NCBI RefSeq assembly: GCF_001194135.2
Contig: NC_068982.1
Coordinates: 134,129,170-134,193,169, forward strand
Direction: 5' to 3'
Origin: Octopus bimaculoides
Taxonomy: Eukaryota
DNA length: 64,000 nucleotides
The stretch's first letter is position 1. Every line of letters begins with the position of its first letter. The translations under genes were made by a program, and so were the position numbers. The notes beneath the pieces were generated by a model. It was not told the origin of the DNA. It saw nothing but the letters and a program-made list of their open reading frames with translations, and made no database searches. Below, piece by piece: positions 26,101 through 35,100 of this stretch.

Positions 26101-29100
26101 TTGATCATCTCATCAATAATTAAAAGTGGACATTATGTATTTCAATCTTGACTTTTACACCATTAAATTTCTAATACTAGTTTTATTAACATCTAAATGA
26201 TTGAAATAGAATTCAGACTCTGTACTTTAGTGTACCAAACACTTAACTATATAATATTCAATCTAGTGCATCATCACAGATCATACTTAGCTGCTTCAAA
26301 AGATTTCAATAATGACTAACTGATTTAGTAGATTGAGTAGATTATGATTAAAAGCAGTCTAACCACAACCATCTCATCTTTTTAACAAACATATTGTATC
26401 TGGGCCAACATTATTTTTACAATGGTAACATGTAATTTGAGAAATATTTGGCCATTATTTCTAGCAAATCAAGTGACCACATAGCTTCCTTTGTTGGCTC
26501 ATAAGAATAATAGTATTTTTTCTTTCTTGTAATTCTTGCAAGAAAGGTGCAATTTGAGAAGGCCCAGTGGAGAATTTAATTAACTTTACTTATTAGCAAT
26601 GCAGAACACATATCTAAAGACACAGCCTTCAATGATGCAACAACTTTAGCAATATTAATTAAAAAGTACAAAGAAAAATATGGAAATGTTTATACTGATA
26701 GTGATTCTCTGATGAAGGAAGAAATAATTAATGTCTTTTGAAGGTTATGAGGAAAAGTTAAGTGAGTTACTGGTGACTATTTCTTCAACCACTGAGGGTG
26801 AAAGATGGATGTTGGCCCAGACCAGATTTTAGTTCAGAAACCTGAGAAACATAGCTACATCTAACAAGACATTTAGTCAGATGTCCTACTATTTCTAGTA
26901 TATCATCATGTTGGATGAAGAAGAGAAGACCAGCTACTAATAAAGTAACTTGAAATTATTCAGATCATAAAGGATACTAACCCACTTGAGACCATTTCTG
27001 GTTCTTTGATATAAATGTCATGATTTAAAGGGATTTAAGTTAAAATGTTCCATCAAAATTTATTGTTAATTCACGAATTCATCATTATTTTCAAAATTAA
27101 TTGAAACAAAATCAGCATATTTCAACAGAGAGGGTAACAAAAACAGGTTAAAAAAAAAACTATTAAAATTTTCAACTGTTGAAGACACGCTGAGCAAAAC
27201 AAAATTGGTGTTTTAGGAATTCAGGTTTGTTGTTAAGGTAAATATAAAAGCTCTAAAAAAGCTACCTAAGATCAGAACATAAACAACTGTATTCTAGTTA
27301 AAAATAATCAGTAATTTAGTATGAATATTGAAACTGAATCTTGTAGCACTTGTAACAAATTATATTAATTCTCTCCTTAAATTTTAAATCTGATGCACAA
27401 GGCCGATTTTTTTAAAGGGGAATTACTATGTTAATAAATCAATAAGTATTATAAAGATCTATTTACTCCATTAGATAGTGTTAAATGTTTAAGGGCCCCT
27501 GAATTGATGGTACTAATTAGTGACTGTGAGTCTATTAAAGTGAATTTAGTTTTCAAGAAGCTGGAGGAAGGGGTAAGTTCCATATCCAATTGTTAAAAAG
27601 ATGTTTTGATGAAAGCTTTTCTAGAAATTACTTACCTAAATATGCAGGAAATATTTCAGTTATCTAACAAAGGAATACAAGGAATGGAAAGCAAATAAAC
27701 CTTTATTCAGTGAAAATATTTTTACAAGAATTGTGATTTCCTATTTAACAATTATTTATTTCAGATTGTAATTTTTGTTTCTTACAATTTTGCCTTACTT
27801 TAAACTCCTTGCTGGTGCTGTTTTGGAAAGGTATGAAGGTCACCAACTCCTATTTCTACTATCTAGAAATAATCCTGTCTATTTAAGAAATTGATATTTA
27901 TGGATAATAATGCAGTAATAATATTTTTATCTCAATGGCTGCACTAATGAGCTTACCACAACTCCTCATTGCTTCTCTGTCCTATCTCAAGGATCAATTA
28001 CCTTTTTATGACATAATCTATGAAAGAACATAGCCCTATGGTTAGGGTAATTGATCCCAAATCATAAGTTCATGATTTCAACTTTCAGACAGAGCAATGC
28101 ATTGCATTCTTGAGCAAGACACTTCATTTCATATTGTTTTCTAGTCAACTCAACTGAAAATGGAAACTGGGATAATCTCTTACCTAATGACAGACCTGTT
28201 TAAAATGTAATCTAGTAAATCCTTTTGAATGAGTATTCAATTTAAAAAAAAAATATGGGTCCTTATTGAAATCAAAATTTAAGAGACAAGAAAGAAAAAG
28301 AAGTCATTTATTATTTTTTTTTATTTTTATTTATTACAAGTAAGAATTTCTGGGTTCCAGTAGTTTTTTGGCATACTGTGTGGTTAGGAAAGTGACTAAA
28401 GTAAAAACAAAGCAACTGCTAATAAACTGTATGCAAAATAAAATTTTAGTTTAAAACTTTTCTCTTCCTAACTGATGTTAATATTTTCATTTCTGGTGCT
28501 GTTAAATTTTGCTTATACAATGGTTACGCATTAGTTTATGTAAACTAGGAGCAATCAAGGTTTAAAAAATGACATTGCACACGAAATTATGTGTTAAAGC
28601 AGTTGTTTCATTTCATGAATTTGTATTTACAAATCAGAATGAGTATAAATGGGGAAGGGGAGGGGTCACACACACACACACACACACACACACACACATA
28701 CATGATCAAAAATATTTAGTTATTAACAAAATATATTACATCTTAATTTCTAATGAATATCAACAGATTAGATGAAAATAGGTTATATAATATGTAACCA
28801 TTGTTAAAAGAGTTAAGAAAAGTGAGTTGTGATATTAGGCAGAGACAAATAAATGTATAGTGAAGCTGGTATGATATGAGGCATCTTTTACAGTCATTCC
28901 TCTTGGTATTTGTATACCTTTCTCATATATATATATATATATATATATATATATATATATGTATGAGTGTTAATATTTTATAAGCTTAAAGCTTGTAAGC
29001 AATCATTGTGCAATGACTAAAGAAAATAGTCTAATATTGGTGCATATAAGCCCTTGATAGAAAAAAGGTTTCCCATGCACATGGGAAACCTACATTTTTC

Positions 29101-32100: not shown

Positions 32101-35100
32101 TTATAGAATGTTTTCTTTGCCCATATATCTGTCAGAAAATCTGACCTACAGAACCTTTAAGTTGAATACCAACAGTTCCATCAGTCTCACTACCCGGGAT
32201 GATCTGATAAAGGGAATTGCCCCTCATCTCCTGACTAACTTATTAAAAAAAACAAAAAACAAACAAACAAACAAAAGAGCTTGGTTAAAAAATTGTGGAG
32301 CTTTTCATTAATCAAAATCAGTTCTAATATTGACTAATCATTGTGTGCAGATGCACCCATCTACAGACAGGCATTTACAAATACACAAATTTAATTCATA
32401 ATTTATTCTGAACAAGATGGAACAAATATGCANNNNNNNNNNNNNNNNNNNNNNNNNNNNNNNNNNNNNNNNNNNNNNNNNNNNNNNNNNNNNNNNNNNN
32501 NNNNNNNNNNNNNNNNNNNNNNNNNNNNNNNNNNNNNNNNNNNNTAATTAAAAATACACATTAAGTACAGGACATCACCAGTGAGTGAAAAATATGTAAA
32601 CACATGAGAGATACGTACAGGATGAAAACAAAAAAAATACACATTAAGTACAGGATATCACCAAATGAGTGAAAAATATGTAAACACACAGTGATAAGCA
32701 CAGGACAAAATTTCAATAGAAATCTAATTCCTCCTCAGTTGTCAACTGTTTATTACTATCTGTTTTGAGCATCGGTGAAAGCTAGAAACAGATAGTAATA
32801 ATCAATCGACAACTGAGGAGGATTTAGACTTTTTTGATATTTTGTCCTGTACTTATCGCTGTGTGTTTACGTATTTTTCACACATTGGTGATATTCTGAA
32901 CTTAATGTGTATTTTTTTTTTGTATTTGTCCTGTACTTATCTCCCGTGTGTTTATGTATTTCTCACTGGCTGGTTATGTCCTGTACTTAATGTGTATTTT
33001 TAATTATTTATAATTGAACGCCACATAGAACAATATTCTGCCAAACAGCACATAAGTTTTTTTTATAATCTCACACTTTTTAACTCCATACCTGCCTATT
33101 TATCTTTAATTTATTATTAATTCATTGACAACCATATATCAACTGGTTGGAACAAAATATACCACTATTTTTTATAGACAACAACCAAATAACAGTTCTT
33201 TGGATGAGGTAGATGACTCTACTTGCCTCAGTCTAACTATCTGGAAAGTTAAGTCTAATCCTACTAGGGCTGGCTTTGGGGGAAGCATCCAGTTGTGAAA
33301 TACCTGCTCCAAGAACACCTGCAAATGTCTGAATCTGCAGGTCTTTCCACGATATACCAGCATGGAAAAAAGGACCTAGAATTAAGACACAAAGGAAAAA
33401 CTAAAATGTTCTTTTAAATATAAGATACCATTACCTTTCCAAAATTAGTTTCATTATGATGGCTCCCAGCAACTGTAGACGTGAGTGAGTTACTACAGTT
33501 AGTAACAAGTAAAGCAGAAATTGTGAACTAATATCTATGTGAAGTTTATGAATGTCACTTTGAATGTGAGTTCCAATTGTGTTATTAATCAAAAGCAGAT
33601 AAAAGCATACCATGACCAGTAAAAAAAAAAAATTAAAAAAAGGTATGTTAAATAATAAAACAATAATATACTCCACAAGAAACTAATTGCGCTTTATGAT
33701 TTATATACAACTTGATAACCACATTTAATTACCAACAGACACAACCAGTTTTTGTAATTATGAGTTATTACCCTTGCCTTTGGTTTAGTCAAGCACTACC
33801 ATGTCTATCCTTGATAGATATAATTGCAATTAATGAATGTTATAGTGCTCACCATATTAATTACTTCCGCAGCTATTTCACCATGTCTTCCATAGATGAA
33901 GCAAAGTTCCTTATGCTCTACTGCCGCATGCATTTTAATGTTATAATTCAACAGATGGTTTTATAATTCTTGCTTTTAGATCCAGTCACTGATTAGCATG
34001 TTTGAGTAAAAAGTAAGACTTCTCTGTTGGCATTTAACTTACTTCAAGCTATGGCTATCTCATTGTTTTCAAATAAAGTAACACACAAACTGAACCTCTT
34101 GTGGTTTGAAACAAACGTATATCTCAGGAGTCCCATTTATGTGTTGTGCTACTCCACTTGCAATTAGTATTCATCAATCAGACTTAACACTAAATGCTGA
34201 CCTTACAAAATTCCTTTTGCAGTTTCTGGCACCCAATAATTTATTTGCAGGCATAGCTTATTTTAGCTTCTCAATTAGCTGCTTTCTTTTTTTTATAACC
34301 CAAATTTCTAAATATGACTTTTATTAGAACCTGTGACTGGCCCTCGTGCTACCAGCACGTAAAAGCATCCACTACACTCTTGGAGTGGTTGGCATTAGGA
34401 AGGGCAGATCAGATTGGAGCCTGGTGCAGCCTTCTGGTTTGCCGGTCCTCAATCAAATCGTCCAACTCATGCTAGCATAGAAAGCAGACATTAAATGATG
34501 ATGATGATGATTCTGTGGCTGTATAGTTAAAAAGCTTGCTTTGCAGCTGTGTGGCTTTGGGTTCAGTCCCACTGCATAGCATCTTGGGTGAGTGTCTTTT
34601 ATTATGGCTCCTAGGAGCTGACTAATGTCTTGTGAGTGAATTTGGTGGACAGAAACTGAGTGGAAGGCTGTTGTGTTCGTCTTTGTGTTTGTCACTCCAC
34701 CACACCATTTGACAACCAAATTTGGTTTGTTTACATCTTGTAATTTAGCAGTTTGGCACATAAAAAAACCCCCCACTAGAATAAGTATCAAACTTGAAAA
34801 GGTAGTGCCCCAGTATGGCTGCAGTCCAATGACTAAAACAAGTAAAAGGAGATAAAAAAGCTATGTCTGAAGTTTAAAAAAAAAAACCTCAGTTGTTTGA
34901 GTACCATAATTGATATTGAGTACCATAATTCACATTGATATTGTTGTACTCAAATACTCTTAATTTTGGTTGTATATGTGAAACCAATTTTGACCTACAT
35001 TTTCTAACAATATCCTAATAGTGTGGAACTGAACCATATAGAAGCTTTGCTGTTTATAATGGACAACTCATGGTTCCAAGTTTTGCATAACAGGAGATAT

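Follow-up and report, generated by a model that had tools for sequence, protein, structure and literature searches.

Most neural microexons preserve the reading frame. In Drosophila, the R3-type receptor phosphatase genes Ptp10D and Ptp4E are among the genes that are mis-spliced in the absence of the microexon regulator eMIC; Ptp10D contains an 18-nucleotide (nt) eMIC-dependent exon and a 48-nt neural exon, and Ptp4E contains exons of 83 nt and 37 nt (PMC8797185). Exons of the eMIC programme are characterized by a UGC near the 3' splice site, a long AG-exclusion zone, a CU-rich tract, and a strong branch point (PMC8797185). In a passage of PMC3676743 that cites Murata et al. 2010, phosphorylation of C-terminal tyrosines of R3 phosphatases is described as recruiting Src-family kinases or Grb2. 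Here, we analyze a 64,000-nt stretch of the Octopus bimaculoides genome (the window; contig NC_068982.1, positions 134,129,170 to 134,193,169), the minus strand of which carries an R3-type receptor phosphatase gene. An earlier note had proposed, from the letters of the window, that two microexons of 38 and 28 nt in the last intron of this gene compensate each other's reading frame and may switch the phosphatase C terminus four ways. We describe the exons, the conservation, and the annotated products of three C-terminal tails. With a probability of roughly 75%, the choices made in this intron are these three annotated ones, and the 38-nt segment is not among them.

Results

Three annotated C-terminal tails

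The RefSeq isoforms X1, X2, and X3 (XP_014781629, XP_014781630, and XP_014781631), which fall into one protein cluster at 90%, diverge only after the residues ...AFLY, at the end of the penultimate coding exon. The exons and candidate segments that border or lie within the last intron (37816-14178, 23,639 nt), and the isoforms built from them, are as follows, with coordinates given as positions in the window.

37958-37817, minus strand: penultimate coding exon, beginning EQYIYIH and ending NKAFLY in phase 1, donor GTAAGT; identical in RefSeq X1-X3
33472-33435, minus strand: 38-nt candidate segment, acceptor CTACAG/, donor /GTAATG; open in phase 1
33375-33233, minus strand: alternative terminal coding exon of X1; in RefSeq, in O. 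sinensis, and conserved in Argonauta
27663-27636, minus strand: 28-nt cassette exon, acceptor TTGTTAG/, donor AG/GTAAGT; used in X3; homologue in Argonauta
14177-14146, minus strand: coding part (10 residues and stop) of the canonical terminal exon; used in X2
Isoform X2: 10-residue tail after AFLY, from the direct splice 37817>14177; DDEGI-type end; the form that skips both short segments
Isoform X3: DN-stop after AFLY; 28-nt exon included alone
Isoform X1: 47-residue tail after AFLY, then stop; alternative terminal exon

In the proposed mechanism, direct splicing of 37817 to 14177 would produce the ancestral DDEGI end (X2). Inclusion of the 28-nt cassette would shift the frame and bring a stop after two codons (X3), so that the YxN motifs would be kept and the conserved acidic end lost, and splicing of 37817 to 33375 would produce a 47-residue replacement tail (X1). 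These three outcomes after the FLY exon would be mutually exclusive. Under the exon-junction rule for nonsense-mediated decay, the X3 mRNA should escape decay, given that its last junction lies 20 nt beyond the end of the stop; the earlier note had placed this stop less than 50 nt from the junction. Its more general proposal, that alternative splicing in the last intron switches the tail next to three YxN motifs, agrees with the X2 and X3 RefSeq models: the motifs (YENE, YMNE, and YENT) lie in exon 37958-37817, in the tail after the catalytic domain.

The spliced product of the gene is 100% identical, outside the tested insert, to XP_014781630, which is annotated as "tyrosine-protein phosphatase 10D isoform X2." This identity assigns the window to O. 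bimaculoides and, as judged from the protein sequence, the gene to the R3-type receptor phosphatases, of the Ptp10D-like kind. All features of the R3 subtype were read in the sequence: a single cytoplasmic protein tyrosine phosphatase (PTP) domain (one PF00102 match with E=4e-84 that covers positions 1-233 of the 234 in the profile) with the PTP signature; an ectodomain of fibronectin type III (FN3) repeats (PF00041 match) with a PTPRJ-type membrane-proximal module (PF18861 match); one transmembrane helix, read as a 24-residue hydrophobic stretch; and the YxN motifs of the tail. FN3 families of the Dep-1 type were found in the O. vulgaris and O. sinensis orthologues.

The 28-nt cassette exon

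The 23.6-kb octopus intron was compared by blastn with the 11.3-kb, gap-free intron of Argonauta hians (in L001, obtained via the Argonauta protein), Argonauta being the sole second octopod genome compared. There are few colinear islands outside repeats: 33622-33580 (88%), 33406-33299, 27705-27577, and the terminal exon. The third of these contains the 28-nt exon and matches the syntenic Argonauta intron with E=7e-9 over 132 nt. The Argonauta homologue (L001:32336-32360) is 25 nt long, so that the two exons differ by 3 nt and are both of length 3n+1, and its splice sites, TTGTTAG/ and AG/GTAAGT, are identical to those of the octopus exon. An in-frame TGA stands at the same place (AT TGC TGA, read as D, C, stop), and the annotated Argonauta coding region stops exactly on this conserved TGA, at 32343, giving a protein that ends in ...FLY-DC.

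Splice quality was measured as the number of pyrimidines at positions -20 to -3 together with the number of matches to AG/GTAAGT. The 28-nt exon has 15 of 18 pyrimidines upstream and matches the donor consensus at 8 of 8 positions, and no other candidate on either strand of the intron reaches this quality (1 sense, 0 antisense). Moreover, 27663 is the sole acceptor in a scan of the whole intron that is able to give D-N-stop in phase 1. Inclusion of this exon alone gives FLY-DN-stop and removes the conserved 10-residue end, and all that follows the TGA, in this exon and in the canonical terminal exon, is then 3' untranslated region (UTR). As expected of a cassette, the exon is skipped in one model (X2) and included in another (X3). 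The 28-nt exon is thus genuine and conserved, and it is already annotated as an alternative exon.

Conservation extends into the adjoining intron, as would be typical of a regulated cassette exon.

27635-27577, minus strand: conserved intron flank 3' of the 28-nt exon, including TTAACAATTGGAT; about 80% identical to Argonauta over 60 nt

Read in phase 0, the exon is likewise open, as ITEIFPAYL in octopus and as IAEVWTII in Argonauta. Its differences between the species, counted by first, second, and third codon position, are 3/4/1 or 4/1/3, and a local alignment of the exon alone gave p=0.52. A repeat origin was considered for both the 28-nt exon and the 38-nt segment and was rejected, as both regions are single-copy in the 2.34-Gb genome. 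A further colinear island, at 28351-28304, was considered as an extra exon and rejected as an A-rich low-complexity run.

The DDEGI end and the alternative terminal exon

Isoform X2 confirms that the terminal exon starts at 14177. The coding part of this exon is 90% identical to Argonauta L001:37076-37107, and all 3 differences fall at third codon positions. Family representatives were searched with the annotated O. bimaculoides protein (P0001), and the end N.(G/A)(F/Y)(E/D)-DDEGI was found to be conserved in cephalopod transcripts, bivalves, gastropods, Lingula, Owenia, Tubulanus, a cockroach, a shrimp, and a spider. We know of no function assigned to the DDEGI C-terminal motif. The form (F/Y)(E/D)-DDEGI-x-(V/E) recurs in P0014, P0028, P0036, P0159, P0160, P0313, P0321, and others, and is absent from the vertebrate R3 members.

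The tail of X1 maps to the window as a single block, 33376-33236. The acceptor of its exon, TTAATTCTAG/GTCC, follows the donor of the 38-nt segment at a distance of 59 nt, and this third annotated tail was overlooked in the repertoire of the earlier note. The X1 type of tail is also the annotated end of O. sinensis XP_036370794. Both the exon and its acceptor match Argonauta in the comparison of introns (33406-33299, 79%, E=9e-20); the exon is 70-90% conserved from L001:28314, its frame is open, and the same peptide is recognisable (GPFFHAGMCWKNL...).

The X1 tail (FHAGISW...) also weakly resembles peptide motifs of a repeat with copies on both strands of the window, with weaker relatives at the following positions.

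31273-31302: relative of the X1-tail repeat
44209-44229: relative of the X1-tail repeat
20207-20227: relative of the X1-tail repeat
38377-38412: relative of the X1-tail repeat
17484-17516: relative of the X1-tail repeat
61447-61479: relative of the X1-tail repeat

An old copy of this repeat, exonised and retained in O. sinensis and Argonauta, may have given rise to the X1 terminal exon.

The 38-nt segment

The coordinates, splice dinucleotides, and lengths of the 38- and 28-nt exons given in the earlier note, and the 23.6-kb length of the intron, were all reproduced in the sequence. The same was true of the TACTAAC with its branch A 27 nt upstream of the 38-nt segment and of the pyrimidine tract and GTAAGT at the 28-nt exon. 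The sum of 38 and 28 is 66, the phases chain from 1 to 0 to 1, and the four predicted tails match letter for letter. The strong splice signals that had been ascribed to both exons were confirmed for the 28-nt exon, the sole top candidate, but not for the 38-nt segment: 39 candidates on the sense strand, itself included, and 13 on the antisense strand reach at least its quality. When the 10.2 kb upstream of the 28-nt exon was simulated 300 times with matched composition, a partner of length 3n+2, open in phase 1 and of the quality of the 38-nt segment, was expected 1.14 times, and the probability of at least one was 0.67. Therefore, given a real 3n+1 exon, a compensating partner is predicted by chance.

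The TACTAAC (33504-33498) is one of 3 sense-strand copies in the intron; it is a genuine extra feature but was spotted post hoc, and it is not conserved in Argonauta. The acceptor region of the segment (33504-33456) has a local duplicate of about 50 nt at 36839-36788 on the minus strand, which lacks the AG. The pattern TACTAAC/TAGTAAC...TTGCTG(G/T)GAGCC(A/T)TCAT occurs genome-wide in these two intron copies only, and the pair is an old local duplication.

The segment sits between two of the conserved islands, in sequence with 50-65% identity to Argonauta; identity is 30-40% just upstream and far higher in the X1 exon. Its Argonauta counterpart retains the AG, with 9 of 18 pyrimidines in the tract, and the available donors, GTTGGT and GTCTTT, match at 4 of 8 positions; the real exons of the gene score 11-15 pyrimidines and 5-7 donor matches. 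Local alignment of the segment with the syntenic Argonauta interval gave p=0.07-0.12, in a test that has low power for exons of 28-38 nt, that the real 28-nt exon fails too, and that cannot by itself reject the 38-nt segment. Of the two exons that the earlier note suggested looking for in other cephalopod orthologues, the 28-nt exon was found in Argonauta (25 nt, with the same sites and the TGA), and the comparison did not establish the 38-nt segment as an exon there. Differences by codon position were 2/4/4 in the segment, 4/11/25 in exon 9, and 0/0/3 in the terminal exon.

The 38-nt exon is absent from the annotated isoforms of O. bimaculoides, O. sinensis, O. vulgaris, and A. hians. Neither the peptide of the 38-nt segment nor ITEIFPAYL occurs in any model of O. 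bimaculoides, O. vulgaris (CAI9718161), or O. sinensis (XP_036370794). A 101-residue query carrying the tail with both exons included, aimed at transcript-derived fragments of 56-177 residues, returned zero candidates, and no tail gained RNA-level evidence from this search. Of the four tails that had been predicted, the both-skipped form corresponds to X2 and the 28-only form to X3, and the two forms with the 38-nt exon are in no annotation.

The 28-nt exon and the 38-nt segment both fall within the microexon length of about 51 nt. At the 28-nt exon, the UGC lies at -30 in octopus and -25 in Argonauta, the AG-free zone is 35 and 34 nt, respectively, and there is no UCUC. At the 38-nt segment, the UGC lies at -44, the AG-free zone is 18 nt, and CTAAC lies at -30. 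The constitutive exons of the gene score similarly, and cis-features of the eMIC type were rejected as a means of telling the octopus exons apart from them.

Variation at the same junction in other species

The splice junction at which the octopus tails diverge is an alternative-splicing hot spot in the annotated models of brachiopod, nemertean, gastropod, annelid, and beetle orthologues. In Tubulanus, a skipped form, a form with an 18-residue cassette, and a replaced tail were found. Models of Gigantopelta and Owenia carry 15-residue inserts at the junction, and those of Bradybaena and Popillia have truncated or replaced tails. In a decapodiform-like Logan transcript cluster, only the skipped form was seen.

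Gene structure and intron context

The gene has nine coding exons upstream of the last intron, all on the minus strand, with clean GT-AG borders and chaining phases.

57330-56869, minus strand: coding exon 1
53737-53578, minus strand: coding exon 2
50742-50658, minus strand: coding exon 3
50249-50076, minus strand: coding exon 4
46795-46661, minus strand: coding exon 5
45958-45836, minus strand: coding exon 6
43505-43357, minus strand: coding exon 7
40154-40019, minus strand: coding exon 8
37958-37817, minus strand: coding exon 9

The O. bimaculoides RefSeq models (P0001, 822 residues) begin at MVYSESYANTSF, and in the proteins of O. vulgaris and O. sinensis (P0123 and P0155, of 1503 and 1540 residues) this start aligns with an internal repeat; from this alignment, about 680 N-terminal residues of FN3 repeats appear to be missing from the models. 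The N-terminal FN3 portion in Argonauta (856 residues, FN3 families of the Dep-1 type) is annotated as a separate upstream gene (L001 1-3711, versus 10001-32343 for the remainder), and this two-gene annotation is probably a split model of one phosphatase gene.

The last intron also contains a conserved island outside the exons, an assembly gap, and tandem arrays that adjoin the gap.

33622-33580, minus strand: conserved noncoding island of 43 nt, 88% identical to Argonauta, about 110 nt upstream of the 38-nt segment; no acceptor or open-frame logic
32433-32544, no strand: assembly gap; intronic, touching zero exons
32550-32705: tandem array of 83- to 85-nt units, about two copies
32830-33001: tandem array of 83- to 85-nt units, about two copies

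The island may serve the X1 exon as a splicing regulatory element. The gap, probably caused by the arrays, falls between the two short segments: in the direction of transcription, the 38-nt segment ends 891 nt before it, and the 28-nt exon starts 4,770 nt after it. It is intronic and is flanked on either side by colinear Argonauta matches; therefore, it has no bearing on the frame, though it could conceal sequence. A second gap lies at about 46810-48342 (a run of N at about 47100-48100), in the intron between exons 50249-50076 and 46795-46661. Its flanks translate to the same stretch of about 70 residues, and such a duplicated flank is typical of a gap artefact.

Discussion

The last intron of the octopus gene offers three annotated ways to end the protein, and the tails of X1, X2, and X3 are a case of ordinary alternative 3'-end splicing with some comparative interest. 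We infer that the choices among them are regulated, that each form, including the truncated protein, is translated, and that the DDEGI end has a role. The earlier interpretation is partly supported, and the supported part is ordinary and already annotated.

Several observations weigh against this reading. All isoforms are computational models. The Argonauta model may be partly built by homology, and its use of the 28-nt exon is then only partly independent as evidence of expression. Within the 38-nt segment, three third-codon positions account for all differences from Argonauta in the first 12 nt, which encode VAGS in either species, the block GAAACTAAT (ETN) is unchanged between them, and the indel between the VAGS and ETN blocks is 3 nt, a pattern that would fit coding constraint in the proposed frame. 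An Argonauta version of 35 nt (3n+2) can be read with the weak donor GTTGGT, as one of three possible readings; the resulting chain of 35 and 25 nt would be suggestive, resting on three substitutions and a post hoc choice of donor. Finally, inserts of 15-22 residues occur at the same junction in other protostomes.

In a rival reading, the 38- and 28-nt exons would both be genuine, used either together, as a 22-residue in-frame insert between FLY and the 10-residue end, or singly, so that four tails would result. The arithmetic and the open frames hold, the 28-nt exon is real and open in phase 0 in octopus and Argonauta, and the 38-nt segment has a perfect TACTAAC 27 nt upstream, the codon-like VAGS/ETN pattern, the 3-nt indel, and the possible 35- and 25-nt chain in Argonauta. 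Inserts of comparable length stand at the exact junction in Lingula, Gigantopelta, Owenia, and Tubulanus, and the Lingula set is four-way. However, the 38-nt exon is in no annotated isoform of the four octopod species, although the pipeline found the shorter 28-nt exon, its splice signals are at chance level, and its similarity to Argonauta is not significant. Furthermore, its TACTAAC, pyrimidine tract, and donor are not conserved there, each insert seen in another phylum is encoded by one in-frame exon and does not resemble the octopus peptide in sequence, and the fragment search for the both-included tail was empty. We therefore regard a genuine pair in octopus as unlikely, and its stricter form, a frame-compensating pair conserved across octopods (38 and 28 nt in Octopus, 35 and 25 nt in Argonauta) that adds 20-22 residues between the YxN motifs and DDEGI, as slightly less likely still. 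If that form were true, either exon of the pair alone would give a truncated or frame-shifted tail, in a split, frame-coupled version of the single-exon cassettes of Lingula. The frame-compensating pair of the earlier note depends wholly on the 38-nt exon, which is unannotated, and was not upheld; the positive evidence for a four-way switch is limited to the small codon-like pattern, and such a switch is improbable. Most likely, the AG and GT that border the 38-nt segment are paired by chance, within a weakly conserved region upstream of the X1 exon.

The 28-nt exon might instead be conserved as an element of regulation, unproductive splicing, or 3'-UTR remodelling that tunes the fate or abundance of the mRNA, the DN-stop product being incidental. 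Consistent with this, conservation spans the entire exon and the 60 nt of downstream intron and shows no codon pattern, and everything beyond the TGA, including the canonical terminal exon, turns into 3' UTR. However, the classic exon-junction trigger of decay is absent, Argonauta retains the position of the TGA as well as the 3n+1 length, and truncated or replaced tails are annotated at the same junction in Bradybaena, Tubulanus, and Popillia. We consider this explanation slightly less likely again than the conserved pair.

If the preferred picture of three annotated tails holds, octopods switch an R3 phosphatase among a form with the DDEGI end, a form that has lost it through a frame-shifting cassette of 25-28 nt, and a form with a 47-residue tail, and the YxN docking motifs are kept in all three. 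The hot-spot junction would then point to an ancient and so far unstudied site of regulation in Ptp10D-type phosphatases, a matter of modest specialist interest.

Comparison with known systems

The vertebrate R3 phosphatases (PTPRO, PTPRJ/DEP-1, PTPRH/SAP-1, and PTPRB/VE-PTP) share with the octopus protein the single PTP domain, the FN3 ectodomain, the PTPRJ-type membrane-proximal domain, and the post-catalytic YxN. In contrast, their tails end soon after YxN and lack the protostome DDEGI end, and to our knowledge the octopus alternative exons have no vertebrate counterpart. The eMIC/SRRM programme of Drosophila offers a likeness at the level of the gene, in that the R3 phosphatase genes of the fly also contain alternative exons of very small size; the octopus 28-nt exon differs from most neural microexons in that it shifts the frame.

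The brachiopod Lingula anatina has isoforms X1-X6 of "tyrosine-protein phosphatase 10D." Its two last-intron cassettes are single in-frame exons of 66 and 57 nt in a 3.5-kb intron and, unlike the pair proposed for octopus, involve no frame compensation. Homology of the 66-nt cassette to the 38 and 28 nt of octopus, which is of equal size, was rejected, as there is zero sequence similarity and the Lingula cassette is one exon. The Lingula gene is nevertheless orthologous to that of octopus and varies at the same junction (..GFE/DDEGITVEVT), where its two cassettes are combined in four ways: neither in X4, 22 added residues in X2, 19 in X3, and both cassettes in X1.

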